Below, in pieces: positions 15,143 through 55,930 of a stretch of 64,000 nucleotides of DNA. Within the stretch, counting starts at the first letter, position 1. Each line of letters opens with the position of its first letter. The position numbers and the translations under genes are program-made. The notes under the pieces were generated by a model. It saw only the letters and a list, made by a program, of their open reading frames with translations. It searched no databases and was not told where the DNA came from. Source of the DNA: Eukaryota sp. TZLM1-RC (lineage: Eukaryota; Protista; Metamonada: BaSk clade); the NCBI GenBank assembly GCA_040285825.1, contig JAUPSS010000003.1, positions 2,294,001 to 2,358,000 on the forward strand, in the 5' to 3' direction.

Positions 15143-15291
15143 TGATGGTCTTGGCTGGTTAGTATCAGACATAACTGTATAAATGTAAGGAGATTTATTA
15201 CGAAGAGGAATTGCATTCTCTCTTCTTAAACTAATAGGCGGAATACTAATAAACTATATAAATAAACTACAAATACTATTCAAGACTAACA
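15143..15291 (-). repeat. 3' LTR
   Basis: TGTTAGTCTT...ACCATCA on the minus strand; 148/149 identical to 22401-22549. Confidence 0.95.
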
Positions 15292-18200
15292 CTGCCTTTT
15301 CCTCTCTTTCGAGCGACGAGCCCTGGAAGCTCTAGTCATAGGAGGAAATACGTTGGAATTAGTACGCTTCTTGGGAGGAGCTGATTTAGTACGGCGACGT
15401 GCATTTGAAGTCTTGAAGTCTTTATACGCGGCAGTATTTTGGACTGTAGATACGTGTTCAGTGGTGATCTCTTTTCCAGGCCATTGCACTTGGCAAAAGT
15501 CACTGTCCTGAATGAGCACTTTTTCAATGATGTGTTTTTCGACATCACCTGCAGCGACCCAGGAGTGGAACTCATCGTTGGTGGGCAAGTTGGAGTGCCA
15601 GGGTGCTAAATGTTTGACGCTAGCTTGGACAGTCGTACCGGTGCAGAGATTCTTAATATTCACAGACGAATTGGATACGATTTCAGTTATTAGAAAGGGT
15701 CCTAAATAGTCTCCATGAAGCTTAGCGGAAGAGTCAGATGCTCTCAATACCAATTGACCAACTTCAAAAGGGTTTGGAGTTGTCGATCTTGTTAGCTTGG
15801 AAGCTTTGGAAGCTTGATGGTGTGCTGCCTTTTCCTGTTTTTCTTTCAACCTTCGAAGTTTAGATTGAATTTCTTGAATAAAAGATGACTCAGACGTCGA
15901 ACTTTCAATGATTTCAAGAATTTTGCCAGGGTCTGATCTAGAGGACACATCTGAGCCAAAGATCACTTGGTATGGAGTGTGGTTGGTTATTGAGCTCTTT
16001 GAAGAGTTGATCAATAATTGCACATAAGGCAAATATTCAGAGCACACATCGTAGGCTTTGAAGTCTACGAGCAATTTCCGTTGGTTTTGCAGGATGTCTC
16101 TGTGTCGGCGCTCTACCAAGCCGTTGGACTGAGAAAACCTAGGAATTGACTTTGACACCTCTATGCCTAAAAATTTGCTTAGTTCGTCGAAAACAGCTTT
16201 GGAAAATTCGGGTCCATTATCGCTGTGGATTTGAAATGGAATGCCAAAGATGGCACAGACTTTCCAGATTAATGCATCTGCAGTAAGATTAGCATTTATT
16301 TCTTTTAAGGGCACGATGATCGTGAACCTAGAAAAACTGTCGATAAATACAAGGATGTATTTGTAGCCTTCTTGATCTTCTGGAAGAGGACCAATAACGT
16401 CGGCGTTGACGCGAGCAAAAGGTCTGTCAGCCCACAATTTACCGGTGGGGGGAACATGCAGTTTGGGAACTGGCTTTGTTTTCTGACAGGAGGGGCATTC
16501 TTGGACGTGCTTATTCATGTCGGTGAGCATGTTTGGCCACCAATAATCGCTGTTGCTGAGCTTGTTCAGGCTTTCAGCTTTGCTTGGATGGCCTCCTTGC
16601 AGAAGTCCATGCAACAAGTTAAGAGTATCCTTAATGAGTGATTTGGGAATCACAATCTTGTTGTCGTGAGTCATATATAAATCAAGATGATTATTATGAG
16701 CACAGTTGTTGAAAGAGGGGTCTTTGGAAGCTATGGCAAGCTTCTGTTCGGACCTAATCCAACAGAGCCATGGCTCAAAAATAGGTAGGTTGTTGGAACA
16801 TCGGTCTCTTATGACCATGATACGTTCAAAGTTGTTTAAATCTTCGATGTAGTATCTTTCATTTTCTGTTCCGTCAATTTTATCGATGTAAAATATTGGA
16901 TGAAAATTTGGAGACATTTGATGGGACAAATGATTGATCTCTTGATGGTCTATAGGCGGAACTATTCGAGACAACATATCTACCCAGAAGTTATCTTCCC
17001 CTTTGATATGAACTAAATCGAAGCAGAATTCGGAGAATATGGGTAACCATTTGGTTACGATTCTGTTCTTCTCAGGAGCCGTGAACATGTAGGTAAGGTT
17101 TTGATGGTCTGTGAAAATGACCAGTTTTCTTCCCTTCAAGTAGTTTTCAAAACCACTTTGAGTCAACATGAGCAGGATGGCATAGAGTTCCTTTTGGTTT
17201 GTCGGCCAGTTCTTTTGCGAGTTGGTTAGCAACCTGCTGAAGAAACTGATGGGCCTACATTTTCTGTTGATCAGGGGAGTACCGGGGTCGTCGACTTGTT
17301 CGATTTGTTCCCAAATGACGCCACCTACAGCGATGTCGGATGCGTCGCAACTTATTAGAATTTGGTTTTCCAGAGGAGGTAAGCTGAGCGGCATGTGCTT
17401 CGCTATCAGTTGTTTGATCTTTCAAAGGAGCCCGTCGTGCGTGTCGGTCCATTGAAGGCGTTGCGCGCGGGGTTTGGGTTTAACTTTGAAGTTGATTCCA
17501 TCCTTCTTAGTCAATCTGATGATAGGAGCGATGAGCTCAGATAGCTGAGGAAGCCATTCTCTAATGAAATTGACTGATCCTACAAGGCTGCGGACGTCTT
17601 TGATTGTTTTTGGTCTAGGTAGATTCAATAAAGATTCAACACGAGTGGGATCGATAGTCCGTTCTTTGTTTTGGAAAACACTGCCCAGTATCTTGATTGG
17701 GTGTCTGGAAGACACGAAATGGCACTTTGGAAGTCCCAAGGAAACTCTTCTGCATCTGGCTTGATCAAGGACGCGTCGGAGGCGTTCAATGAATTCGTCA
17801 AAGGTTGAACCAATGATTATGATGTCATTTATGTAGATGAAGACACCGTCTCCAGAGAAGATGTCAGCCATGACGTTTTGGAAAACGGCTGGGACATTCT
17901 TGAGACCAAAAGCTGCACGTTTGAACATGATGCTTTTGCCAGGAATGCTCAGGGCTGTTTTCTGCCAATCCTTTTTAGCAATTTTGAGTTGCCAAAAGGC
18001 TTTGGGGAGGTCAAGGTTGCCTATGTAATTCGCTTGGGAGAGAAATACCAGCACATCGGAGATCCTAGGAAGGTTGGGCTCAACAGGAATGGTGTTGGCG
18101 TTGACTCCGTCCTTGCCACTATAGTCACCAGTAAGGCGGGGCTTACGGTTATCTAGGTAGACTACTAGACAGACTAGTGAGCTGAACTCATGGTTCGATT

Positions 18201-19092
18201 GAACAGCGAATCCTGAGTCTATGAGTTCGTCAAAAATTTGGTTAGCGACTTCTAGCCTGGCTGGATTCAGGGTCCTGGGGGGTTTTCTAACTCTGACGTC
18301 TTCATTGTAGAAGTTGATTTCCATGGGAGGGCAATCAATACCTTCAGCATGGGGCTTGAGGGTAAATACGTCTTCGAACTCTTTCAATGTTTGAAGTACG
18401 GACTTCTTGAATTGGTCGTTGTCGAGGTTGATGGTACAACCAAATGAGTTGATGTGTTCCAACCAACGTGTGGAAACGTTGACGACTTCTGAAGCTTGCG
18501 ATATTCGATGATCGAATTCGGCTTCAGGTAATAGTAATGTGCGACAGGCGTCGTCCATTCTAATGTAAATGCCCTTGTTGTTCATCAGCCCAAGGTGACT
18601 CAACAAGTCAGCGCCAATGAGAATGGTCTCATGTCCAGGAACGATGCTGAACTTGTGTTTCACGTGTACAATCTGGGTAACACTGCCTAGTCTAATGCTA
18701 AGGGTTCCAGAAGAAGTACCAAGGGACTGTGAGGTAGTTCCATCAGCAATCTTGTATGATATGGTTTCGTTGGAACGTGCCATGTTACAATTACTGATGA
18801 CGTCTTCCGTGACTACTGAGCATGTTGCACCAGAGTCGATTATGCCTGTAACTTCGACATTGTTGATCAGAAAGTTTAATTGTAGGCAGTTTTGGTTCAT
18901 AGATTGTACCATAAAAATTGTATCAGAATCATGTCCATTCGAGTCGGCTTGTTCTGAGAAGAAGTTAGCCTGACTGTTAGTTAACTTGGTGGGTTCTAAG
19001 TTGGCGAGAGGATTGATTAGGGATCTTTCCATGCCGAGCTTTCTGTGTGTGGTAGTGTTGTTGTTGTAGGGGGTATGGTTTCTAAAGTACAT
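15286..19092 (-). pseudogene. pol: pol (protease, RT, RNase H, integrase, chromodomain-like tail) with one in-frame TGA at 17422-17424
   Basis: IIDSGA protease; LDLPKAFWQ and FGLKNVP; YINDI in place of YIDD; CDAS and FTDHQNL RNase H; HH-CC finger; integrase D..IHSDNGPEF..SNGLVER; ORFs 17422-19092 and 15286-17394 share a frame. Confidence 0.9.
15292..15310 (-). promoter_or_regulatory. Polypurine tract
   Basis: GAAAGAGAGGAAAAGGCAG immediately 5' of the 3' LTR. Confidence 0.85.
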
Positions 19093-22000
19093 AAATAGTG
19101 ACGGGAACGTTTATTGTAAGAAGAGCCTCTGCCTCTGCCGCGAGTGCCTCTTCGACTACGGAAACCAGAACCTCTAGAACTTCTGCCTCGAGCTTGCTGT
19201 TGAGCTTGTTGTTCTCTCCACTTCTTGCTCCTTTGGCAGTCTTCATTGGGACACCTTTCGGTCGGATGACCCTTTTGCTTACAGAAGTTGCATTGGACAT
19301 CAGCGGCCTGGGAAGACGATTGTGGTAGGCTTCCTCCTCTCTTATTTTGTTTGGGGCATTTACCTGGACCAGAACCTCGTGGTCTGGGAATGTCAGGTGG
19401 GGAGGGAACGACCGTGGGAGGTCGGCGAGAGGCCTGCTGGTGAGTTAATTGGTTCTGATAGGTGAAATCGACATGATTTAGCTGTTCCATGAACGATCTG
19501 GCGTTACAAAAATTCTCGTATTCTATTTGAAGAACACTAAAGAATTCACCTAGGGTGTGTCCATCGCATGAGTAGTGAGAGGGAGCCGACCAGATCCTGA
19601 GGAGTCTGTCTCTAATGGAAACAATCCCAATGCTTTCTAGGACGTGGGTAGCAACTACCCAGTCTGGGAGTCTGTCAGCTGGAGGAGTGGAGCTTATGGA
19701 GAATGTTCTCAATTGTTGAGAGATGCCTCTGAACTCCTGGATGGCAGTGGAGCGAGTCAGGACTCTTCCAATGTTGACCATGAAGTCAATCCATCTATTG
19801 CCATAATCTCTTTCCGACCAGTCCATGTTTGTTGCAAGGAGAGCTCGATTTGCCTTATCCAGTCTGCTGAATTGGGTTCTTCTCAGAATTTGAGCCCAAA
19901 TGATGCGTTCGTCTCTTGAGGTTGGGACCGTGGGAGAAGAGATACTTAGGTAAGCACCTTGATATCTTAACGCGTTTAGCACCTCAGGGGTGACACATTC
20001 AGCGAGGCCTCGGGGGTTGATCATCATGGCTTGACGGAACAAGTCCCATTCGTGAACTGGCTCTCCAGTGATGTTACCAAAGTACTCGTCAAACGATGGT
20101 TGGGAACCTTCTCTAGCTAGTTCTAATTCTTCACGTAGTCTGGCAACTTTATTGGCTAGAGCTATCTGGGCTGGATCCTCAACGTTGCTTCTTGTTTCTC
20201 TTAGGACTCGATCGGTACGACTCCAGAGAATGAATTTGTTGACAAACTTTAGAAGTTTATCAGCGTCTCTCAAGTCGGAAGCTTCAAGATATGGACGTTT
20301 AGGACGGTCCGTACGTCTGTCATCTCGATCTCTTGATCCAATCATTGAAGAAAGGAGAAAACTACTTTCGTATGTGCCCGAGAAGGGTGAATGATGAGAG
20401 GAAATAGAGGTTGTTGAACCTGTCGTGGAAGGTGTAGGTTGGGGTTGAGGGGCTCGACTAACGGGAGTGATGGGAGCAGGAACTGCATCAGAAGATGTGA
20501 TGGGAGTGGGTGATTCACTGCTCACAGTGATGACGTCGTCGTCGGCTTGTTCCATAGCAGAATGGTTGGGATTAGTGGTTTCCGTGGTAGAAAATGAATC
20601 AGTTTCCATGGGAGGTTGTGATGATTCAGGAGCTTTAGCGGAGAAAGATGGAGCTTCACTCTGTTGAGGTTGGGGTTGAGCAGAAGGTTCTGTCTCTTCA
20701 ATCTGGGCTGGGACCTGATAAGAAGAGATCGCTGGTTGGACCAAGCGTGTCTTTTCAATTCGACCTTCAACCATGACCCATTTTAGCATCCTGGATTCTA
20801 TGCATCCAGGGAAAACCGTGACGAGCTGGAGAGCTCTTTGAAGATTGCCCGATCTTCTGTGGTCAGGACCACAATATGAAGCTATATGGTCAGGACGTCT
20901 GTCGTAAAGGAAGAGTCTTTCACCATATGTGGTTTCGGTAAACCACCACCCTGTTCTATAATCTCTGTCGATAAGGATATCGAGAGATGCGTTGTACCCA
21001 GGGCTGAACCTAGGGTAGGGGCAAGGGTTGTGAACATTTATGAAGAGGTTATCTTCATCTCCAGCAAAGCGTCTGAATACTCCTTCTCGAGTAGTTCTCA
21101 TGAACCTAACTCCGGGTCTTGGTTAGTAAGTTGGTTCTGGGTCATTCCTGGAGGTTTCTGGGGTGATCCTTTCATCGGTAAGAAATGGACCTATTCTGGG
21201 AGAGATCCATAATCCTAAGTCGTTCTCGACTTTTGGACCGTAGAAAGGAGGACGTTTGTTGCTCATCTCCGTGGGAGGGATGGCTTCTGGATCCTCTGGA
21301 ATGACTTGTGTATCCCTATATCTAGCATAAGGGTTGTGCTGACGGGAAGCACCATGATGAACACTTGAGCTAGCGTAGGAACTTGCTTAAGAAGGGGTAG
21401 GTTGAGCAGGTGTAGAGGATGTTCCTCTTCTAGCTTCAATCTCTCTATCCGTTCTTTATCTGTGTTCCCAGTTTCGTTCTTCTTGGAGAAAACGCTCTAC
21501 ATATTCTTTAGAGACCTCACCAGGAATTCTGTCAATTCCAGATGAAGGTGCCGTGGGAGGGACCTGATGTTGAGGTAGAGGGGAAAATTCCTTGGGAGGT
21601 TCCTCGTACTCTACTAAATCTGAAAAGATTTGTTCGTACCTTTTCCTTTGCTCTTCAGAAAGATACGAAGGAAGGTTCGAAGTGCTAGGAATGGAATCAC
21701 TAGCCTGAAGAGGGGAAACAGACAGATTATTAACTCCACTTACTGTTGAAGTAAGAGGAGATCCTGAAGTAGGTACAGCAGGATTTTGAATATTCCTCTT
21801 AACAGTTGGAACTGGAGGGAGGAGCTGTTGAGAATGAGAGGGTGGAACCTCAGAGGGTGGAACCTCAGAACTAGATGAAAGGGATGAAGATGGTACTTCA
21901 ATGGCCTTCTTAGAGGAGGAAGAAGGTTGGTCTTCCAATCCTTCCTTTGCTGTGAGAGAAGGTTGAACAGTCTCTCTGCTCTGAGTAGAAGGTGAAGGTG

Positions 22001-22430
22001 GTACTTCAGAACTTTTTCCTGAGAGGGGAGAAGGTGGGACTTCAGATGCCCTCAAATGTGAAGGAGGAAGAGGAGCAACGGAATCCTCAACATCTTCATC
22101 GTCGTAGGAGACTAATGAAGGGCTTCTTCTTTCCAAAGGAATAGAATCCTTAGGAAGGTTGTCTCCTTCCACAGGAACGGAATCCCGAGGAGGGGAACTT
22201 CCTTCCATTGGAACGGAATCCTCAGGAAGGGAACTATCTTCCCTTGGGGTAGAACCCTCAGGAAGAGTTGCTTCAGGAAGCGCAGAAGCTTCTACCGAAG
22301 AAGGGGGCACGGAAGCTGTGTCTGTGGTTAGTGATGAGGAAGAGGGACCAGTCTCTTCCTCGCGGATCCTACGTTGAGCCGGGGACGACCCAATACATAT
22401 TGATGGTCTTGGCTGGTTAGTATCAGACAT
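19017..22430 (-). pseudogene. gag: Very long gag (about 1137 codons) broken by three in-frame TAA codons
   Basis: ORFs 21456-22430 and 19017-21101 share a frame; the linker is open except TAA at 21456, 21387 and 21123; CCHC knuckle CNFCKQKGHPTERC and RG-rich tail; overlaps pol in the -1 frame. Confidence 0.8.
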
Positions 22431-37153: not shown

Positions 37154-37227
37154 CTCCCGCGGTGGGACTTGAACCCACAATCCTTCGATTAAGAGTCGAA
37201 TGCGTTAACCGATTGCGCCACGCGGGA
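37154..37227 (-). tRNA. tRNA-Lys (CTT)
   Basis: Acceptor TCCCGCG/CGCGGGA; anticodon arm TTCGA-CTCTTAA-TCGAA; T arm GTGGG-TTCAAGT-CCCAC; T5 terminator at 37143-37147. Confidence 0.95.
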
Positions 37228-42899: not shown

Positions 42900-44540
42900 T
42901 AACAAAATGAACTCATAACTAATGAAACGAAATTCAATGAACCAAGATTTCCTCTATAAAATCTTGATCTGCTTGCTGTATACCCAAAGCTTCTCTTATT
43001 CGATTGAAAAACCGAGGTAATCTATTAACAATAGCGAATTGAATTCGAGAGCGCCATAATCAGATATCAAATCTTTTCATTGTTTTTACTTGAACTATTT
43101 TTTGGAAATCATTCAAAAAAGTTCCTGCTTCTTCTGATAGCCTTCCGTTTATCGAAAATGGGAAAGCAGTAAAAACAAGTGGTCTATTTCTATCAACATC
43201 AGCTTCTTCGATATCTTTGTCATGTTTTCTATGTTTTTCTTTAGCTTTTAATTCAAGAGCCTTTTCAGGATCTTATAATTCATTTTTACGTAGAGCAATC
43301 TTATAATTCACCTTTATGTAAAGCTGAAGAAGTCAAAATTATCAAGTACACAGAAAAAATCAATAACTGGAAATCCAACTCACATACTCAATACCTTCTT
43401 TGTCCTATTGCTTTTTCTTTATTTGGAACATTGGATAAAACTGCGTTATCAACATTGGACAATCCTCCTTGAATTTTATCAATGATTTTGGTAATTTATG
43501 TCATTCAAGTGGTAAGAATTTTGCAGGGAATTTATGGAAGAATCGTATTATTTTCGCTTTGTACAGAAGTGTTCCCAAGTACTTGAGTTTAATGATGTCC
43601 AAACTTTATAAGGATTCATCAAGAGTTCGCGTGGAGAACTTTTTTTCTTATGTGTTTTAGTTTGTTTTGTTTTTATTTGATTCTTCGTATAAAACAAACT
43701 GCGTTATCTTTTTTGGACGATTTCTTTTTTATTGACAAAAATAGAACTGGAAGAACATTTGACCGAACGTTTTGGCAAAACCGAATTGTATTTTCTATTG
43801 TTTAAGGAATGTATAGCCTGGTTTCTAGCTTGTTGTTATCACTGGAAAAATTTAATGAAGAAAATGCTATAGGTAAGTTTTCAATACTAGATGTGGAGTT
43901 TGAGGAGATTGAATTTAAGTTTGTTACAATTTTGTTTGAATAAAATATGTAAATATTTCAGTTAAAAAATAAAATAAAATATGTATCAAAAAAATTACAG
44001 GATTAAGTTTTCTACTTTGAACCAAAGTGTCATTTGCAACATTACAGGAGACAAAGTCAACAATAGCTTCAGAGTTCTCAATCCAATCACAGTATACATC
44101 ACCTCTGTCATCAGAACCAAAATTATTCAATGACAGTGTTTCTTTCAGCAGACGCTCTTTGATACACGAGATTCTTTCAGTTCGTGCCATATTAAAAAAC
44201 GTGTCTCTAACAGCATCATGTAATGAAGTACGATAAGTTATCAATTTCGAACAATTCAAAGCATGACGCAAAGTGAGCTGTGGTGAAATCGAACAAATTC
44301 ATTTTGGTTTTGATTATAATTGATTAAATTATTCAATGACAGTGTTTCTTTCAGCAGACGCTCTTTGATACACGAGATTCTTTCAGTTCGTGCCATATTA
44401 AAAAACGTGTCTCTAACAGCATCATGTAATGAAGTACGATAAGTTATCATTTTCGAACAATTCAGAGCATGACGCAAAGTGAGCTGTGGTGAAATCGAAC
44501 AAATTCATTTTGGTTTTGATTATAATTGATTAATGGGGAT
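42900..44540. mobile_element. Three-layer non-LTR nest: family A (-) containing family B (+, 43272-43997) containing family C (+, 43451-43695)
   Basis: B flanked by caggat (43266-43271, 43998-44003); C flanked by 13-bp aaactgcgttatc (43438-43450, 43696-43708); 206-bp tandem duplication at 44121-44533 within A. Confidence 0.8.
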
Positions 44541-44591
44541 ATTCAAATATAATCTCATTTGAATGAATCCAATTCGAAATTCGAAATTTAC

Positions 44592-45195
44592 CAATGTCAG
44601 AATTCCGAACGTTCGCAACCCTTCCGAACGATCGGCCGAACTAGTTTTTGTTCATTTACACGTGTCAACACAGTTTTGTTTAAAGATGTTTTCCCAAATC
44701 CCTATTTCAACTACTACAATAGATTTCAATGTTTAAAAATCTGTATTCATACATAAATCCCCTTCTTTACATCAACTTTCTTCAATGCCAAAGCACCCTG
44801 TTTACAAACTTCTGAACAACGTTAACTACGATAAAGTGTCCAAAAATATTACTTCACAGTGCCGCTGCTGCAGTAAAATGCTAAAAGGTTCAGCCCGTCG
44901 CTTTTCCTCCCATTTCATTAAGGAGTATGGAGCTGGATATGCCTTATGTACTCAATTATCCACCATTTATGTCAAGGATCTAAACACTGTCCTAAGTTAA
45001 TGACCTAGATTTAGATGTTGTAGAACTTTCTGAATAAAAGTTTACTTTGTTGGTTGATAGTGAGTGCAATAGTATAAGGAAGGAGGAGATAAACAGCGTT
45101 TTGATATTAATGAATCAAAACGAGATGCCGAACTAACCGAACGTATCAGTAGGTGCCGAACATTCGGCCGAACTAGTTCAGTAATTCTAACATTG
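44592..45195 (+). mobile_element. Non-autonomous hAT transposon derivative (604 bp)
   Basis: TIR CAATGT(C/T)AGAATT; 8-bp TSD aaatttac (44584-44591, 45196-45203); CCGAAC subterminal repeats; BED-finger ORF 44785-45000. Confidence 0.9.
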
Positions 45196-45344
45196 AAATT
45201 TACATATGAAATTTCTTGTCCTTTCAAGTAATTTCTCACAATTTTTCCTTGTTAATGAAAACCAAAAATTTTAATTGAGTTCTTTGATTCAAATGAAATC
45301 CTGATAATGTTGCAACTGACACTCTACTAAATGTTCGCATTCTA

Positions 45345-46931
45345 ATGTCTCACTTCGAGTGTACGGTCTGCCGTGAGACCCTGGATAATCCCACTACTCT
45401 GCCTTGTGGTCATAGCTTTTGTCGTGATCGTTGTCTCGAAGCTTTTCGAAAAGACAATACTCGTTGTCCCCTTTGTCGGGAAGAAATGCCTCCTCCCCCT
45501 TTCCGAATCAACATTGTTTTGCGAGATGCTGTTGAGGCTAGTCGTAAAGAATCCGAAAATACTCCCATCTGTATGGAATGTGAGGAAGATACTGCTACTC
45601 GTTTCTGTCCTGAGTGTCCTGGTAGTTACTGTGATCCATGTTCCAGATCAGCCCATCAACCCAAAGTTCTCCGATCTCACAGCATGGTACCGATTCAACA
45701 AAAGAAAAACGTTGCTCCTATCAAGTGTTCTCATCATCCAACCAAGAACCTGGAGTATTTCTGCACACTTTGCAAGGTAGCGTTGTGCGATGCGTGTGGG
45801 TTCCTCAAAGCTCACTCTCATCACCCTGAAGAAGTTGTTCCTTTACCCATAGCCAAGAAGGTTTTCAATGTCAAGGCCAAGGAAGTGCAAGTTGCTGTTG
45901 GAGCTACCACTGCTGCTCTAGACTCTACGCAGGAACGTATTCAAGAAGTTGTTAATAAGGTTTTTGTTGAAGGTCAATCAATCTTTCATTCCTTGATTGG
46001 TGACATCATCAGACAGTCAATTTCAAAGGAAAAGGGACTTGATACATGCAGTTCTGTGGATGAGTTGCTAAACATCTCTGACCATTATGAAGAACAAATT
46101 CGTGAGCAGCTTGATACTGCATTTGAATCTCTCGCTGACTACAAAGATTCCCTGGCACAAAGCCTCAAATCTGTAAAGACAGAAGCTGATAAATTTAGGC
46201 TCAGTGTCTTTGCTGAAATGAAAGGCAAAGAAACCTTAGTGGATCAAAGTCCAAATACTTTGGTAAGGGGAGAACAATTAGTTTCACCTACTACGTTGGA
46301 TTTAATTGTCCAAAAAGGCAAGGTTTCTGCATTGGAAAATCCAGAATATACTTTTTTGGTAAATTCATTATCACGGGAGCTTCAATCAAGCTTGTTCGAG
46401 GGAGTGATTACCATGTGGAGTGGTGCAGTGATTCCTCAAGGATGGGCTCTTTGTGATGGGCAAAATGGAACACCAGATCTACGTGATAGGTTTGTTTTAG
46501 GGGCTTCTGATGTTCCTAATATTGGTCAAAAAGGAGGTCAAAATCAGGTTACATTGACTGAAGGGCAGGTTCCAAAACATAAGCATGGATTACGAATATC
46601 CCTCAATCAAGCAGGAGAACACCAGCATGGTCCAAATGATTTATTGAGGGATGATGGTGTTAAAATTGTTCAAAGCTACAGCTCCGAGCTTGATGATGCA
46701 GTTGTTAGACTTCGTCGTCAACGGTCTTCGGCTCATAGCGAATTCAAAACGCGGACACCTATTGGCTCCAGCTCAACAAGCCAGCAGATTCGTTCTGGGA
46801 AACTTTGTGAGGTGAGTACCACTGGAAGGCACACCCACACAGCAAATGGTTCTATTGAGTTTACTGGTAACAACCAACCTCATGAAAATAGACCAGCTTT
46901 CTTTAAACTTGCATTTATCATGAAGATTTAG
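45345..46931 (+). CDS. TRIM-like RING, B-box1, B-box2, coiled-coil protein fused to a phage tail-collar/fibre-tip domain
   Basis: C3HC4 RING CTVC..LPCGHSFC..C..CPLC; two B-boxes; from 46401 GVITMWSG..IPQGWALCDGQNGTPDLRDRFVLGA...VTLTEGQVPKHKH...QPHENRPAFFKLAFIMKI; intact 528 aa. Confidence 0.9.
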   Translation: MSHFECTVCRETLDNPTTLPCGHSFCRDRCLEAFRKDNTRCPLCREEMPPPPFRINIVLRDAVEASRKESENTPICMECEEDTATRFCPECPGSYCDPCSRSAHQPKVLRSHSMVPIQQKKNVAPIKCSHHPTKNLEYFCTLCKVALCDACGFLKAHSHHPEEVVPLPIAKKVFNVKAKEVQVAVGATTAALDSTQERIQEVVNKVFVEGQSIFHSLIGDIIRQSISKEKGLDTCSSVDELLNISDHYEEQIREQLDTAFESLADYKDSLAQSLKSVKTEADKFRLSVFAEMKGKETLVDQSPNTLVRGEQLVSPTTLDLIVQKGKVSALENPEYTFLVNSLSRELQSSLFEGVITMWSGAVIPQGWALCDGQNGTPDLRDRFVLGASDVPNIGQKGGQNQVTLTEGQVPKHKHGLRISLNQAGEHQHGPNDLLRDDGVKIVQSYSSELDDAVVRLRRQRSSAHSEFKTRTPIGSSSTSQQIRSGKLCEVSTTGRHTHTANGSIEFTGNNQPHENRPAFFKLAFIMKI

Positions 46932-47881
46932 ATTTTGTTCACTGCTATAAACACATGGATTGATACCACTTTTGTATAATGCTAACTTGCTAGAAGTTGT
47001 GCACGTATTGGAGTGTATAAAGTTGTAGCATTAAAAAATAGTGTAAAGAACAGCAATAATTTTCAGCGCTCTCTCAATTTGTTGTACCAACAAATTTTAA
47101 AAAAGTTTATGTCAATGATGAGATCAAAGGAAACAACAGATTTGTTTTCATCGGCGTAACAATATAATCCTTAAATTCTGTAATTTAGAATAATGTTACA
47201 GAATAAAAGTTTGTTATATCTCAGTGTTGTGCATTTAATTGTCTTTTTGGGTTCTTTCTCAACACATTAATCATGAATCAACTCAAAAATCACATTTTGA
47301 ATGATGTACTTCTTGTGTTGTTATTGATGATGTGACAATAAAACTCTTGTGCCTAAAACTTCAGGAACAATTTGCATTTAAATATTCGTTCTATAAGGAG
47401 ATATGTATTTTTAAAAGCACAACATTTCAGTATATGCATTCGATAAACCATCTACAAAGAATCCACTGCAATAATTTGGGTATTGAAGCTGTTGTTTCTA
47501 CTTATTTTCTTACTGACGAAATTTGGAAACTGGGTTCTTGAGTTTTCGTTAAATTATTTTTCTTTTTCTAAGTTTTCATAACAGACTGCGTTTCAAATTC
47601 GTTAAGGTGATGGAAAAAACTTCCAACACAGCCACTCACTTTCAAACTTTTTCTGGAATATATCACCAAAGTATTAGTACTGTATTATTGTGAAATCATC
47701 CAACAATGAACTGGAATGTGTCAATTTTTGCCAAGCACAATTGGGCTTTCAAACACTGAAACAATGTTTCAAAACATATATTTCAAAACACCTCAGCGAG
47801 AGAGATCCTGAAAAGATATTCTGAACAGAAGATGTTCAGCAACAACTGAAACAAAACGGTTTTATTACACACTGTTAAACA

Positions 47882-48308
47882 ATGGAGAGTGACGAAGAAA
47901 GAGAGCACAGACGCCAAGAGTACTATAAGACTCACGAACGGCCTCCACAAGAACAGCTACAGGAAGAGCGTCGAGACAGACGTCACAGAAAGCATGGTAC
48001 ACATGGCATTCACGGATGGTTTAGATATGGTCCACATGAACAATTGCCGTTCAGCTTAGGAGACTCAGGACCTAATGGTAAGTTGATCGCTCCGTCTGAC
48101 TATAGGATGTTTTGTCAATTTGGAAACCAAGGAAGTTCGGAAGTTCAAACCCGAAGCTGAAACCCAATTCAAGTTTTATGGACCAAAGTCCCATATTGTC
48201 CCCGGCAAAGACACAGGACCAATGGGAGGTGATTTCGATTTGCGAAATAGTCAGTTATTTGAGCCTAGAGACCCAGATGATCCATTTTACAAAGATATGT
48301 ACATGTAA
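47882..48308 (+). CDS. Unknown 132-aa protein, two exons (intron 48078-48105)
   Basis: Removing the 28-nt gtaag...gactatag intron gives SGPNG-CFVNLETKEVRKFKPE, matching the paralogue. Confidence 0.85.
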
Positions 48309-48859
48309 GAACCATTGATTATAAACAAAACGTTCAATAAACCTGAATACTACTTGACATCACCACACTGATAAGAGAGCTAATCTTCGAACGTCTGCTT
48401 TGGAATTGGCAATCAATTGGCAATTTTTCAATATTGTCAATAGTGTTGACAACGTCATCAATCTTATTAGCAGACTCAGAAATATATTTAATTCAAATCT
48501 GCTTGGTCTGTTTGAGACATTATTGATTAACAACTACTTTTACATTTTTCTCATTGTTTTGTTCTTTATTCCCCCTAAGAATCACCATGTCAAAATTGTG
48601 CTCATGGGTTAAATTTTCTGCTGATAACTATTTGCCATTTATTATTTTTTTTATTTTTTATTGGATCGCAATTATTAGATTCCCAATTCAATTTTCCCAA
48701 ACTTCAGACATTAGTCTAGTAACAGTATGCCCACCATCTTCTAATTCATAACCTTTATGTGTCGAAAGATCACAATCTATATTATCAAGCAATCCTTCAT
48801 ATCACCAGTGTTCAATTGAATTTCACTCATCAACGCTTTATTACCAAGCTATCAGTAAA

Positions 48860-49287
48860 TCACATATACATGTTCTGGTAAAATTCATCATCGGGATCTT
48901 TTGGTTCCATCAATTGATTGTTTTTCAGATCAAAATCACCACCTCTTGGTCCAGTATCTCTACCTCCAACATGTTCTTTTGGACCATACATCTTTACTCC
49001 AATTTCTGTCTCAGGCTTGAACTTTCGCACTTCCTTGGTCTGTAAGTTTAAAAAACATCCTTTGATTAGTGGTTGATTAAAAGAATAAGTGGAAGCGCAA
49101 CGTGGCATTACGTTATCACCAGTATTTCAAACAAACCATTGGGTCCTGAATTTCCGAGATTATGAGGTAATTGTTCGTGGGGACCATATCTAAACCAACC
49201 ATGAACATCCTCTGTACCATGCTTTTGATGTCTTCTTTCACGGCGTTCGTCACGAAGACGTTGTTGTTCTTCAGGAGCTCTAGACAT
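48860..49287 (-). CDS. Unknown 116-aa paralogue, two exons (intron 49060-49136)
   Basis: 77-nt gtttg...actaatcaaag intron at the same codon position; shared HGWFRYGPHEQLP, DTGPxGGDFDL, DPDDxFY..MYM. Confidence 0.85.
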
Positions 49288-50773
49288 ACTGGCAACAATT
49301 GTGGAACAAATTCTGGTCAGTTTAAAAAAGGACAGAATATCTTTCACTGTAGAGGTTTACAGTGTTCTACCACTAACCTTTTTTCAAGTTCAATTTGTCA
49401 AGAGTTCAATCTTTTCGGTATTGTATGTGAATCCTTGTAATCCACAACATCCTGATCAATAATTGTGAATTTAGCTCAGTTTTAATTTAATTAATTATAT
49501 TTAATTTTTTTATTTCTTTATCTATTTATCTATTCTTTGTTTTTCACATTTATAGTAATCAAAACAGAAAATTATTGCGTGTTAGAAAAATTGAAACAAG
49601 TGTTATATTGTAAAAGTCCATAAACAAACACATACTTATAGTCTTTTATTGAACAAAACAACCAAAATAGTGGCTGATGCATTTAATTCTTCATTGATCA
49701 ATTGTGAACAACGCAAATTATATAATACAGTGTCTCAGATCTTTATTCATAGTTTTCAACATCCTTTTGAAGACTGAAAATACCAGCTTCTCACCTGTAA
49801 CTCCCAGAGAAAGTCCTTTCGAATCCTGACACAGTTTTGAACTATAACCGCAAAATTTCTATGCAGTTGAATCACAACTTACATATTTTGTGTGATGATT
49901 TCAGTGCCTTCAGTTTTTCACAACATTGAATTAAGTTAAAAACACATAGCTGTCAAAGCACGAAATTTGTGCCATTAGGGCATTGATATTGGACAGTTCT
50001 GAATAACAAAAGTTATCAACAGCATCAACTGTAAAATTTGCTCCTCGGCTGAAAGCCTAATTATGGAAGTTTAGTTTTATCTATTCTTGTTTTTTGGCAA
50101 TCATTTATGCGTCAATGACGATTGAAGCAATAAAATTCAAGATGATGTAAATGTTTGCCAGATATTGTCATCACAATTTTCCTTTTCGAACTACGAACAA
50201 TTACAAATGTTCTTGATTCAGTTAGATACATCCTCTTCAACAACAATGTCAGTATTCTGCATAGTTTCTGTAGGCGTTTTAAATGAGCTGTCTCGCAAAA
50301 CTCAAAATGATTAATTATTTTGTATACTGATTGAAATGGTCAATCAAAATCCTGGTGATAGACTGTCGAATTTCTTTCAGAGCTAATCATTTGAAAGTTT
50401 CGGTATTACTTTGATGTGTATTAATGTTTACTATGTTAAACTGTTTTGAAATAATAATGTTAATAATAATGTGTTTAGACTAAAATAATATACAGATGTA
50501 TAATTGTATCAGTTTAAATTTCCAGACCTTGGTAACACTCAAATTTTTTGAAGAGGTTTTCCTGTCAAGCAGGAAAAGTAACATGCAAAAGGCAGAAGAC
50601 ACGAATTTTGTGAAATAATTTTGTTGTTCTCATTTGTGAATAAAACCGTTTGTGCACCGTTTTATTAGAACTGAATCAAATTAACCTAAAATTTTAAACC
50701 TTGACAACATTAAATGTTTTACCATGATGAAATTATTATATCAATCAATATAATTATAAAACACAAAAGAAAT

Positions 50774-52539
50774 CTAAACCTTCATGATAAAAGCAAGCTT
50801 ATAGAAAGCCGGTCTATTTTCGTGGGGTTCGTTGTTACCACTGAAATCCATAGAGCCATTTGCAGTGTGGATGTGCCTTCCAGTGAAACTTTTTCCACAA
50901 GGTTTCTCGGTACCGATTTGCTGCTGGCTTGTAGGGCTCGGGTGAGGTCTCAATTGGGGAGGTATGCCAGAACGAATGCTTTGTGAATAAAGTGACGAAT
51001 CAGTACTTTGGACATTCTTCTTCTTTTCGTGGGGTTGGTTGCTACCAGTAAATTCCATAGAAGCACTTGCAGTGTGGCTGTACACTCCACTGCTTCTCAA
51101 CTTGCAAGGTTTTCCGGAGCATATTTGCTGCAGGTTTTTTGTTGTGTTACTAGAAGGAGTAGGGCGAGTACGTAGACTAGCGACTAGGTCACCTTGCTCA
51201 GGGCTGTATTTTTTAACAGTTTTAACACCATCCCTCAAAAAATCGTATTGGCTGTGCTGGTGATCCCCTGCCTGATCGAGCGTAATCTGTATTCTATGCT
51301 TATGTTTTGGAACCTGCCCTTCAGTCAATGTAACTTGATCTTGACCTCCTTTTTGACCAATACTAGAAACATCAGACGCCCCTAAAACAAACCTATCACG
51401 TAGATCTGGTGTTCCATTTTTCCCGTCACAAAGAACCCATCCTTGAGGAATCACTGCACCACTCCACATGGTAATGACTCCCTCGAACAAGCTTGATTGA
51501 AGCTCCCGTGATAATGAATTTACCAAAAAAAGTATATTCTGGATTTTCCAATACAGAAACCTTGCCTTTTTGTGCAATTAAATCCAGCGTACTAGGTGAA
51601 ACTACTTGTTCTTCCCTTACCAAAGTATTTCTACTTTGATCCACTAAGGCTTCTTTGCCTTTCATATCAGCAAAGACACTGAGCCTAAATTTATCAGCTT
51701 CGTTCTTCACAGATTTGAGGCTTTGAGCCAGGGAATCCTTGTAGTCGGCGAGAGATTCAAAAGCAGTGTCAAGCTGCTCACGAATTTGTTCTTCATATTG
51801 GTCAGAGATGTTTAGCAACTCATCCACAGAACTACAAGTATCAAGTCCCCTTTTCCTTTGAAATTGACTGTCTGATGACGTCACCAATCAAGGAATGAAA
51901 GATTGATTGACCTTCAACAAAAACCTTATTAACAACTTCTTGAATACGTTCCTGCGTAGAGTCTAAAGCAGCAGTCGTAGCCCCAACAGCAACTTGCACT
52001 TCCTTGGTCTTGTCGTTGAAAACCTTCTTGGCTATGGGTAAAGGAACAACTTCTTCAGGGTGATGAGAGTGAGCTTTGAGGAACATACACGCATCGCACA
52101 ACGCTACGTTGCAAAGTGTGCGGAAATACTCCAGGTTCTTGGTTGGATGATGAGAACACTTGATAGGAGCAACGTTTTTCTTTTGTTGAATCGGTACCAT
52201 GCTGTGAGATCGGAGAACTTTGGGTTGATGGGTTGATCTGGAACATGGATCACAGTAACTACCAGGACACTTAGGACAGAAACGAGTAGCAGTATCTTCC
52301 TCACATTCCATACAGATGGGAGTATTTTCGGATTCTTTACGACTAGCCTCAATAGCATCTCGCAAAACAATGTTGATTCGGTAAGGGGGAGGAGGCATTT
52401 CTTCCCGACAAAGGGGACAACGAGTATTGTCTTTTCGAAAAGCTTCGAGACAGCGATCACGACAAAAGCTATGACCACAAGGCAGAGTAGTGGGATTCTC
52501 CAGTGTTTCACGGCAAACCGTACACTCGAAGTGAGACAT
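50774..52539 (-). pseudogene. Second TRIM/tail-fibre copy with two +1 homopolymer frameshifts and a duplicated tip
   Basis: Near-identical to 45345-46580; extra base in runs at 51847-51850 and 51525-51531; B-box2 Cys to Arg; the frameshifts could be sequencing errors. Confidence 0.8.
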
Positions 52540-53389
52540 TGGATTGGGAAAGCTTGATATAAAATCTAAAACTAGATCAAATGAAATTTCTTATTGTAAA
52601 ACCAAAGACATGTGATGGATCCAAAAATATTTCAGTACCCGAAGAACTCCTCTACAACACCTTCATACACTTGTTCATAACACTTACTCTTCAAATTGGA
52701 TCAAAGAAAGAACACTAAACGTTAGCAATCGATTCGTTGTGTGAAATTCAATGTGGGAATGTGAGAATTTAAGGAGGACCCACCTCATCCTTTTTCTTCT
52801 TATGAACATGAACTGAATGTTATTGATTGACATTGGATGTGCTTTTAAGTATCTTGTTACAACAAATAAGCAATACAGGTACAACTTGTTGACCATTTCT
52901 GTCAAGATTAACCATTTTAAGCACATCATTATAATTTTTTTGCTCTTCAACAAACGATTAGAAATAATCAAAATTTAACAGCACTAACCAAACACAATGC
53001 GCAAATGCGTGTTCACCAACAATTGTCAAGATTTGTATTGTGTATTAAAAGTTGATTTCAAAGCTGCAAATTTGACTGTTTGGTGAACAGAGGTTCAACG
53101 CATTATGAGAAAAGAATGTATCTACTGAGATCAAAGACCTCAATTCGACTGTTATTCCTTCAACTGTAAGTGTTTCACCATTTTCTTAATAATTGAGCTC
53201 TCTTTTTCGTCAATCATCAATGGAATGTTACAAGTATAAACAATGGTGAAATTTTACACAGTTAATCAACAGGGCATTTCGGCTTTTTTATCATGATAGG
53301 TTCATCTACAGGGAATTGAAGGTACCGTTTCAGAATAAATATTATTATTCGATAATTTGATAATTTAATAAATTAAAAAAAATGAAATA

Positions 53390-55930
53390 TTTATTTTCTA
53401 CGTAATTACAAAACAAAACAAATTTAAACGCATAAGAAACAAAATTTCTCCACACCAACTCTTGAAGAATCTTTGTACAGGTTGGACATGATCAAATTTC
53501 AATATTTGGAAACACTTCTATACAAAGCAAAGGTGATACGCTTCTTCCATAATTGCCCAGCAAAATTCTTACCACTTGAACGACATAAATTATCAAAATC
53601 TTTGAGAAATTTCAAACCAGATGGTCCAGTATTGGCAAAAATCAGAGAAGGCAACAGGAACAAAAAGAAAACTTTTTTTTCCTTTATTTATTTTTATTCA
53701 ACAACAAATATGAAATACACAATTAAAACTCCACATCCTCAAAACCTGCCTCCCCTACATCAAAACAATTAATTGCTAAAGATTCAGAAAATTTCCCAAA
53801 AGAAGATAGTGAATCAGAAATTAGTTTTACCATTCCCTTAAAAATAGAAAATACAATCCTGTTTTGCCAGTAAACACGATTGAAAATTCTTCCAGTTCTT
53901 TCCTTAATAACTGCAACAAAATCCTCAAGGAAAGCCATAGCAGCCTTACCTAGAGATCCAAGCAAAGATAAAACAAATGGACATAAATTATATTGGGCAT
54001 GAGAATTTTCATTAACCGAGGAAATGGGTTTCGCATATTTAGCAATTTTATATTTTTCGCCTGCAAGAAGAGGATTATTTACATCCGAGTTAATGAGATG
54101 TTCGTTAGAGGAATTACAAGGGTCGATAGACATGGCGTCCAAAATAGTAAAACTACCATTTAAACCAGGAACAACTAGATCACCTCTAGTCAGACCCATA
54201 GAAGCTCTGTTGTAACGCGTACTATCAATATTGGGATCATCAAGAATTAATTTTGATAACAGCGGTTCTAAATAGGAATCTACTCTATATGATTTGCACA
54301 TTACATAAATTTGGTCCCTGACGTTATTATGCACTTTGCTTCTAAACGTAATGAAATGTGTGCAGTTCAAAAGATGAGTAAACAAAAGAGGTTTACCACA
54401 TTTACAAGTTAAATGATTGGGCAAATTGTTTGGCCACAGAAAACAACGAAAACGCATGTTTAGAAGCCATTCATTGTTTTTTTAACAAAAGTCCATAAAC
54501 AGAGGGAACTTGAGTTACTAAAGCAGCAGCTGAACTATCACGAATATCCTTTAAAAAATTACCGACAGCGGGATTTTTAGTTTTGTCCAAGCCAAGTCTT
54601 ACTTCATAATCCAAGCCTTCATATAATTTAACCAGATGGTGCTGAAGCTTTTTCAAGCAAAAACGTAAATTTGGAAGTGATCGGGTGGGAATTTCTTGAA
54701 CATTTTGAGGAAAACACTGAATCCAGATAGCATTAGGCAAATTTTCTAATTCAAATTGCAGTTGATTCAAGTAAAAATTTGATTCACTATTGATCAGATG
54801 AACATCAAAAGGGAACCTTTGGAAAAATTCAAAAACAAAATTTTTACCACCTCCCAAAAATGCTGCTTTACACAGAATCGAAGATTTGGTGAATCCAATT
54901 CCACCCAAATCTGCTGAACAAAATACATGACTTCGAATTAAAGATTCATTTACTTCTAATAAAGAAGAAAAAAATTTGACTCGAAGTTTGTTAAAAGATC
55001 TGCAAAAATTGAGAGATACCGATGGGGGAGTTGACCTTTAAATATGAGTGAATTTTCCAGAATAACAAATTTTTAAAATAAAAAATTTGATGTGTTTCTC
55101 AATGTCACATTCAGCAATAAAACTAAGATCCTTTTCAAACTTCTCCAATAAATTGTTCAACTGGGAATAAATTTCATCCAAATTGCCAAGCCAACATCCA
55201 AGAAACTTAAAAGCTTGTTGGTCATAATTGATAAAAGGAATCTGAGCTCCACCAATCATCAAAGATTGTTTTTCTCTACCAATCAAGAGACATTTAGATG
55301 GGTTCAAAGCTAAACCAATTTCTTTGTATTTCGCCGCAATCGCTTCAGAAACCCTAGAAATACTTTCAAAAGAACCAATAATAGAAATGTCATCCATATA
55401 GGCAACAATACGCAAATCAGGGAAATCTTGTTGTGTCATTTTAATAATATTATGAATAGCCAAACAAAACAGCAAAGGGCCAAGAGGATCACCTTGTTTC
55501 ACACCAGAAGAAGATTAAAGGGTAAAGAAGTCAAAAATTAAGTCTGATTTTTTTCCATAAAATAAATAAAAATATGCAGAAAGTTCAGGAAAATCATGAA
55601 GAATCACATCAAAAATACAATTACGTTTCACAGAAATGAAAGCATTTTTGAAATCCAAATTGAAAATATATTGATGTTGTTGACTATTGAAAAAAAACAT
55701 CTGAAGTCATTGAAGCAACAGAAGCACCTTCAACAGTTTTTATACCAAATTGGAAAGGCTTCAAGTCCCTTGCTTTAGTAGAAATGCTGTTAAAAATAAG
55801 CGAAGAAAGCAATCTGGTTAATGACTCTCCAATAGCAATTGGTCTAACTCCATCAGGTTTGTCACCTTTACCAGGTTTAACTAAAGCAACTAAACGGGCA
55901 GCAGTCAATTCATGCGGAAAGAAAAGAACC
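53390..55930 (-). mobile_element. Decayed CRE-like non-LTR retrotransposon (RT + RLE) plus adjacent family C 3' fragment
   Basis: DGVRPIAIGE, LDFKNAF, KQGDPLGPLLFCLAIH, AYMDD, CKC..HLLNC..HNNVRD, RGDLVVPG, EKYKIAKY. Confidence 0.85.

Follow-up and report, generated by a model that had tools for sequence, protein, structure and literature searches.

A TRIM-like RING/B-box protein carrying a phage-type tail-fiber tip in the metamonad Skoliomonas litria TZLM1-RC

The gene described here, from the protist Skoliomonas litria, joins the scaffold of a TRIM-like ubiquitin ligase to a tip domain of the kind found on phage tail fibers. It lies in a stretch of 64,000 nucleotides (the window, whose numbering is used throughout) of contig JAUPSS010000003.1 (assembly GCA_040285825.1, forward-strand positions 2,294,001 to 2,358,000). 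The sequenced strain, TZLM1-RC, is the type strain of S. litria, a free-living, anaerobic, bacterivorous metamonad of a hypersaline soda lake (PMC11603281); its genome is a Nanopore assembly that was polished with Illumina reads and cleared of contaminants, and transcriptome sequencing (RNA-seq) was used to train the gene models (PMC11316075). The encoded protein, from an unexpected lineage, is an RBCC ligase (RING, B-box1, B-box2, and a helical region) fitted with a recognition-type module that is new, and the combination is unique in the databases searched. We consider its architecture, in which the RBCC part is followed by a tail collar and a His-x-His (HxH) tip, and its eukaryotic origin close to certain.

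Gene and RBCC scaffold

The intact open reading frame (ORF) of 528 amino acids (aa) that a sequence-only reading of this DNA had pointed out is present exactly as claimed (Table 1), and the chance of an open frame of 528 codons at this base composition (stop frequency, ~0.068 per codon) is ~1e-16. The protein was already annotated at NCBI on the same contig (P0268); P0121, P0267, and P0268 are all NCBI proteins of one 3,724,615-bp TZLM1-RC contig and all map to the window, P0121 at 100% identity. The best matches to the N-terminal part of the protein in a full-length protein search were themselves TZLM1-RC proteins. The surrounding genes are typically eukaryotic (an LRR_6/MIF4G protein, a DBP10-type DEAD-box helicase, an exosome RNase PH subunit, a BTB protein, a tRNA-Lys, and a long terminal repeat [LTR] retroelement), and no phage genes, tail and baseplate genes included, were found in the 64-kb window. 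The host of the gene is a eukaryote.

Table 1. Features of the window, with the TRIM-collar gene and its parts first
Feature	Position	Strand	Remarks
TRIM-collar gene, copy 1	45345..46931	+	528 codons + stop, ATG start, single exon, intact
C3HC4 RING, aa 5-47	45357..45485	+	Pfam; ligands C6 C9 C21 H23 C26 C30 C41 C44
B-box type 1, aa 73-113	45561..45683	+	C76 C79 C88 C91 C96 C99 H104 H112
B-box type 2, aa 126-161	45720..45827	+	C128 H131 C140 C143 C148 C151 H157 H160
Helical (putative coiled-coil) region, aa ~167-330	45843..46334	+	Paralog homology; low-confidence model
Neck helix, aa 333-349	46341..46391	+	Directly upstream of collar; pLDDT ~77-79
Collar part, aa ~350-410	46392..46574	+	W/G/C/P core, GTPDLRDRF motif; pLDDT 85-91
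HxH tip, aa 411-528	46575..46928	+	His-x-His pairs 412/414, 426/428, 496/498
TRIM-collar copy 2, inverted	50774..52539	-	Same RBCC-to-collar junction; frame-broken
Inverted (tail-to-tail) duplication of ~10 kb holding both copies	43450..53634	.	Center near 48.6 kb
Gene arms of inverted duplication	45334-46935 and 50770-52550
Outer flank arms of inverted duplication	43450-43646 and 53438-53634
Inner inverted-repeat pair between gene copies	47947-48084 and 49130-49267		72% complementary
BTB-domain protein, 925 aa	30014-32791	-	Last ~320 aa 66% identical to C-terminal domain of paralog P0001
tRNA-Lys (CTT)	37154-37227	-	Sole Rfam/ARAGORN match in window
Ty3/gypsy-like LTR retroelement region	15286-22430	-	Long ORFs: protease, reverse transcriptase, RNase H, integrase domains
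Separate reverse-transcriptase ORF	5928-6752	-

Five Pfam RING families scored above their cut-offs at the N terminus of the protein. The RING has one additional residue between ligands 5 and 6, which is common to all paralogs, and matches the solved RINGs of RNF135, TRIM56, TRIM2, TRIM21, and TRIM5 (7e-10 to 1e-5). Pfam B-box family PF00643 (41.7 bits; cut-off, 24.1) matched two stretches, aa ~73-113 and 126-161, with spacings that fit B-box types 1 and 2, respectively. The zinc-ligand sets are full in all three domains; the C3HC4 RING and two B-boxes read from the sequence were thus borne out, with Pfam scores above cut-off and every Cys/His ligand in place.

The helical region proposed to follow them is less well supported. 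It has few prolines and glycines and a modest 3.5-residue periodicity, but its helices (aa 167-229 and 246-292) come solely from an AlphaFold model of low confidence (predicted local distance difference test [pLDDT] score, ~55-65). It is homologous to the corresponding region of the RBCC paralogs until aa ~313-346, where the fusion junction lies. The full-length AlphaFold model (pLDDT 41; 11 sequences) was too poor to carry a fold search. Neither a signal peptide nor a membrane segment was found in the 528-aa protein (maximum 19-aa hydropathy, 1.33), which is therefore probably cytosolic or nuclear.

The best matches to the scaffold from beyond Skoliomonas were vertebrate TRIM25/8/39/21-like proteins (1e-8 to 1e-5, mostly RING and B-box), and the TRIM25 structure 4cfg aligned to it across aa 4-285. 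Matches of this strength, lying mostly in the RING and B-box, fall short of showing common descent with the animal TRIMs.

Collar and fiber-tip module

The C-terminal module consists of a collar, its best conserved and most confidently modeled part, and an HxH tip in which a variable insert separates pairs 2 and 3 and a conserved N-R-P...I-x-K strand ends the protein. The motifs quoted in the sequence-only reading were all found: the collar motif, HKH (aa 412-414), HQH (aa 426-428), HTH (aa 496-498), and the terminal ...NRPAFFKLAFIMKI. Its expectation of the Pfam family Collar (PF07484) on aa 353-410 was right as to the family, which scored above the cut-off of 24 (24.4 bits with the whole protein and 26.8 bits with the C-terminal part alone), but not as to the extent, as the match spans aa 353-374 only and is marginal, covering profile positions 1-22 of 57. 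Far stronger matches came from tail-fiber families, to which the C-terminal 209 aa align through the final residue (phrog_8469, 4.3e-25, spanning aa 36-208 of the 209-aa piece; phrog_1800, 8.7e-23). NCBIfam gave no match for the module. Among 1.84 billion cluster representatives, 17,044 relatives of the module were found at E ≤ 1e-3.

A family profile built from 44 members was searched against solved structures and matched 6ov6 (Bizionia C24; 1e-20), 9qgo (tail fiber; 3e-20), 9nxk (phage Pa223 fiber; 5e-12), 8kec (cyanophage A-1(L) fiber; 4e-6), and 2xgf (T4 gp37 needle tip; 2e-5), all of which are deposited with three chains per entry. C24 has been described as a putative receptor-binding tip of the long tail fiber of a Bizionia prophage (PMC11821841). 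The tip is therefore homologous to the receptor-binding ends of gp37-type fibers, as had been proposed on sight of its motifs. The link to T4 gp12 that was proposed along with it is weak: Gp10_C (PF21939) reached 16.6 bits against a cut-off of 27, and Foldseek returned the gp12 structure 1ocy at E = 0.09 (probability, 0.20).

Modeled as a monomer, the tip (pLDDT 65) has an extended shape with a template modeling (TM) score of 0.31 to 6ov6. That structure was nevertheless the top Foldseek match of the model (2.5e-5; structural-alignment identity, 26-29%), and structural matches in BFVD were collar proteins at 3e-11. Because TM-scores were low (0.3) even for so clear a homolog, we rested homology on the sequence profiles. 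Each of the six HxH histidine columns holds histidine in 40 or 41 of 42 unrelated members, and in copy 2 as well; over the whole module, the family residue is kept at 49 of 57 strongly conserved columns. By analogy with the solved tips, these histidines would bind metal as axial ligands.

Uniqueness of the fusion

Every match to the full-length protein in a search of 5.8 billion proteins was either RBCC or collar and none was both, in a search whose length range did not take in the 232-aa copy 2 fragment that represents the 90% cluster of the 528-aa protein. Profiles for both parts were found in 1 of the 383 proteins examined, the window's own. Nor did RBCC occur beside the module in any of 154 loci (44 from bacterial and archaeal genomes, 30 from IMG/VR, and 80 from metagenomes, the last searched with a junction-spanning query). 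At some of these loci, matches reached back to aa ~240-330; we took these for a helical neck in common rather than for RBCC sequence. The architecture search that the sequence-only reading had proposed (RING, B-box, and Collar) thus returned no further fusion among the 5.8 billion proteins or the 154 loci.

A full-text literature search found no paper describing a tail collar or tail fiber joined to a RING/B-box or tripartite motif, and none of the papers naming PF07484 or the collar domain alongside eukaryotes describes such a protein. This agrees with the sequence-only reading, which had not recognized the architecture as described; no second example was found in the databases searched.

Relatives and origin of the module

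The closest full-module relatives (37-48% identity) are mostly metagenomic proteins. Those with names belong to Bacteroidota, Chloroflexota, Verrucomicrobiota, Bacillota, and haloarchaea, and "microcystin-dependent protein" and "tail fiber protein" are frequent labels among them. Annotated phage fibers match the module at 31-35% identity (78 of 50,697 records) and uncultivated viral contigs at 35-44%. The sequence-only reading had named a viral donor. Relatives on bacterial chromosomes are as close as the phage fibers or closer, and the donor may have been a bacterium, a prophage, a phage, or a giant virus. In some bacterial and viral relatives, the match continues past the collar into the helix that immediately precedes it; this helix is predicted with fair confidence, and the captured piece therefore probably included this helical neck.

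Many of the best-scoring relatives (P0122-P0129, P0133, P0134, and P0138) are ~500 aa long and hold three tandem collar-tip modules per chain; some, such as P0122, start with a signal-peptide-like sequence. These triple-module proteins may be single-chain pseudo-trimers of an otherwise homotrimeric fold.

The fold is also carried by giant viruses of protists. Structural matches included Fadolivirus, Terrestrivirus, CroV, and an Orpheovirus collagen-collar protein, and proteins with Collagen, Collar, and Gp10_C domains rank among the best sequence matches. Virophage collar proteins are reported to trimerize and to bind bacterial lipopolysaccharide (PMC12724248). Such relatives, together with the heterotrimers that virophage collar proteins are reported to form (PMC12724248), would suit a protein aimed at a protist virus, whose module would recognize the collar-bearing fibers of giant viruses or virophages, or co-assemble with them as a protomer, and so direct a ubiquitin ligase against structural proteins of the virus. 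The window, however, showed no sequence of a giant virus or virophage, and an identity of ~48% at most to any relative is low for co-folding in an intertwined trimer. We also know of no virus of a skoliomonad, and on this balance a viral target seems quite improbable.

RBCC paralogs and the variable C terminus

At least 10 further TZLM1-RC proteins (P0001-P0008, P0270, and the copy 2 fragment P0267) have the RING, B-box1, B-box2, and helical part, so that the RBCC family numbers at least 11 genes in this genome. The paralogs, distributed over five contigs, are 31-41% identical to the window protein (P0267, 95%). Past aa ~313-346 they diverge: most continue into a DUF7408-like domain (P0002, P0003, P0005-P0008, and P0270; a weak match of 21-28 bits against a cut-off of 27), P0001 has another domain, and P0004 ends there. 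NCBIfam gave no match for these C termini. Several genes of the DUF7408 type share one 1.38-Mb contig, which suggests a local cluster of RBCC genes.

Since the paralogs share the RBCC part and then carry other C termini, the collar and tip occupy a variable, specificity-type position. The sequence-only reading had placed the module where TRIM5 and TRIM21 carry their recognition domain, and the family supports that placement. The C-terminal domain of P0001, for which Pfam and the Protein Data Bank gave no match, recurs on the BTB-domain protein encoded in the window (Table 1); one module is thus found on two E3-adaptor scaffolds, BTB and RBCC.

Second copy and reality of the fusion

A second, inverted copy of the gene lies ~4 kb downstream of the first, tail-to-tail, and is 90% identical to it in nucleotides overall. 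Its reading frame is shifted at two or more points and reaches no in-register stop codon, and a stretch duplicated within the tip makes that part longer; at NCBI, just its two ends are annotated, each as a protein of its own (P0267, 232 aa; P0121, 231 aa). Some of the frame changes adjoin homopolymer runs in a Nanopore-based assembly and may be long-read errors, so copy 2 may be either a pseudogene or a carrier of such indel errors. Both copies belong to one inverted duplication, which the inner inverted-repeat pair shows to cover the whole interval between them (Table 1). An ORF overlapped by the inner pair (47882-48160) encodes 92 aa, with a high share of charged residues.

The Nanopore-based assembly (PMC11316075) and the bacteria present in the S. 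litria culture (PMC11603281) could have yielded a chimeric assembly, or a bacterial or phage contaminant joined to a eukaryotic gene. Yet two copies with a nucleotide difference of 10% carry the same junction, the gene sits within a 3.72-Mb contig among eukaryotic genes, and no prokaryotic relative is closer than ~48% identity. The collar part, moreover, has host-like codon usage and a third-position G+C content (GC3) of 0.31, against 0.29 to 0.35 in host genes. Because two diverged copies carry one junction, the fusion is real as DNA and not a product of misassembly; artifact and contamination, extremely improbable on these grounds, were rejected.

Evolution since the duplication

Synonymous divergence (dS) between the copies rises along the gene, from 0.04 in the RING and B-boxes through 0.15 in the helical region and 0.23 in the collar to 0.59 in the tip, a gradient that suggests gene conversion homogenizing the 5′ parts of the inverted repeat. 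The ratio of nonsynonymous to synonymous divergence (dN/dS) is 0.62, 0.24, 0.31, and 0.73 in the same four parts, and the low values in the helical and collar parts indicate that purifying selection acted through much of the period after the duplication. In the module itself, identity between the copies is 87% at columns conserved across the family and 41% at those that vary. Such a pattern is that of a fold kept constant while its loops diverge; a dying copy 2 under relaxed constraint would add to it.

Part of this record would fit a young, effectively neutral chimera, in which an acquired fragment was joined by chance, duplicated, and is now decaying with no selected function: there are two copies only, at one locus, one of them with at least two frameshifts, the tip has the highest dN/dS, and no ortholog was found elsewhere in the databases searched. 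Copy 1, however, has stayed intact through 528 codons although the fusion is not very recent, given its fully host-like codon composition and a tip dS of ~0.6. The dN/dS values of the helical and collar regions, the 49 conserved module columns, and the retention of all six histidines likewise speak for constraint, and some of the frame changes in copy 2, being next to homopolymers, may be errors of the Nanopore assembly (PMC11316075). We regard a neutral chimera as unlikely.

The same conservation bears on what the module does. The tip could be mainly a trimerization device, comparable to a foldon or a TRAF stalk, for an E3 ligase acting on endogenous substrates that are chosen by other surfaces. 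Its best conserved elements (collar core, HxH pairs, and terminal strand) are the ones from which the trimer axis of solved relatives is built, all of these relatives are three-chain entries, and with so many close relatives holding three tandem modules per chain, the fold is strongly tied to three-fold assembly. A pure scaffold, though, would not be expected to differ most between copies in its family-variable loops, nor does it account for the module sitting exactly where the paralogs have unrelated C-terminal domains, the specificity position in RBCC proteins. That the tip does little beyond trimerizing is accordingly improbable in our estimate.

Proposed function

In the mechanism that we favor, the module would have been captured from the gene pool of prokaryotes and phages, or perhaps from a giant virus, and fused to an RBCC gene already present. 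The tip would trimerize around metal ions like its solved relatives, bringing three RING/B-box arms together, and would bind a surface polysaccharide or protein of bacteria in the cytosol or in a damaged food vacuole. Clustering on the bacterial surface would then activate the RINGs, and the bound particle or nearby proteins would be ubiquitinated and marked for degradation. That the protein works as a cytosolic trimeric sensor ubiquitinating bound bacteria is, on the domains recognized, a proposal with a little less than an even chance of being right. The fuller reading, in which a phage-type tip grafted on a TRIM-like ligase gave the protist a cell-autonomous immune receptor that recognizes intracellular bacteria with the phage's own tool and tags them with ubiquitin, is more doubtful still. 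Recognition of virions, which the sequence-only reading had offered beside bacteria, found no particular support; tips of this type bind cell surfaces.

Several points weigh against a bacterial sensor. TRIM coiled coils are antiparallel dimers, and fiber tips are trimers. Evidence for a coiled coil is weak, consisting of low-confidence helices and a modest periodicity, and the tip, modeled as a monomer, reached no more than moderate confidence (pLDDT 65). That the module binds bacterial surfaces is an extrapolation from the family's phage members. A single intact gene in one species, with a frame-broken sister copy, has the look of a decaying family, and dN/dS, being measured against a possibly dead copy, mixes two histories.

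Comparison with known systems

RBCC/TRIM ligases with pathogen-recognition domains are a pillar of cell-autonomous immunity in animals; to our knowledge, their existence and use in deep-branching protists are largely unexplored. The window protein has the order of domains seen in metazoan class IV TRIM/RBCC proteins (TRIM5alpha, TRIM21, and TRIM25, which end in PRY-SPRY), namely RING, B-box1, B-box2, helical region, and a variable C terminus, and, as in animals, its scaffold forms a multigene family with alternative C termini. The likeness to TRIM5alpha and TRIM21 would extend to mechanism if recognition drives the clustering of RINGs, as is established for those proteins. It differs from the animal TRIMs in its metamonad host and in the collar and HxH tip that replace PRY-SPRY, and the tip, in contrast to the antiparallel dimers of TRIM coiled coils, is expected to be trimeric.

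A geometry with a trimeric head is found in TRAF6, which has a RING, zinc fingers, a parallel trimeric coiled coil, and a trimeric MATH head. Like TRAF6, the Skoliomonas protein has an N-terminal RING and zinc modules, a putative helical stalk, and a presumably trimeric, beta-rich head, and network formation of the TRAF6 kind would allow a trimeric head to go with pairing of RINGs. There is no sequence relation to MATH/TRAF-C, however, and B-boxes stand in place of the TRAF zinc fingers.

On the side of the module, the phage tips C24 (6ov6) and T4 gp37 (2xgf) share the collar motif, the repeated HxH pairs, and the terminal N-R-P...I-x-K strand. Unlike them, the Skoliomonas protein is no part of a virion, and a ubiquitin-ligase scaffold replaces the shaft; it carries a fiber-tip domain yet is no tail fiber. 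The bacterial chromosomal proteins to which JGI and UniRef give the names "microcystin-dependent" or tail-collar are the closest relatives over the whole module. They are ~180 to 350 aa long, or ~500 aa where three modules follow in tandem, and RING and B-box are absent from all of them. Collar proteins of giant viruses and virophages (the Orpheovirus collagen-collar protein and the DSLV2 virophage tail proteins; PMC12724248) carry the module too; these are virion proteins, none of them fused to a ubiquitin-ligase scaffold.

The locus thus reveals a metamonad RBCC family with exchangeable C termini, one member of which bears a domain that in phages recognizes bacterial envelopes. Should the bacterial-sensor reading be correct, the protein would exemplify clearly how a eukaryote can adopt a phage or bacterial specificity module for use in its own cytosol. 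It would also serve as a simple, testable model of domain capture as a source of new immune receptors, and as a trimeric counterpart in nature to the dimeric TRIM geometry. On the fuller reading, as an immune receptor against intracellular bacteria, recognition-coupled RBCC ligases could not be counted an animal invention, and eukaryotic innate immunity could recruit specificity modules directly from the viruses of bacterial prey. Whatever its function, the fusion has no equal in the databases searched and widens the range of uses known for the collar-tip fold.

Other features of the window

The G+C content of the LTR retroelement region (0.43 to 0.47) is clearly above that of its surroundings (~0.35). 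On the minus strand at 43924-44477, two adjoining short ORFs (115 and 73 aa) are near-identical over their first ~50 residues, and this tandemly repeated unit sits just upstream of the TRIM-collar gene.

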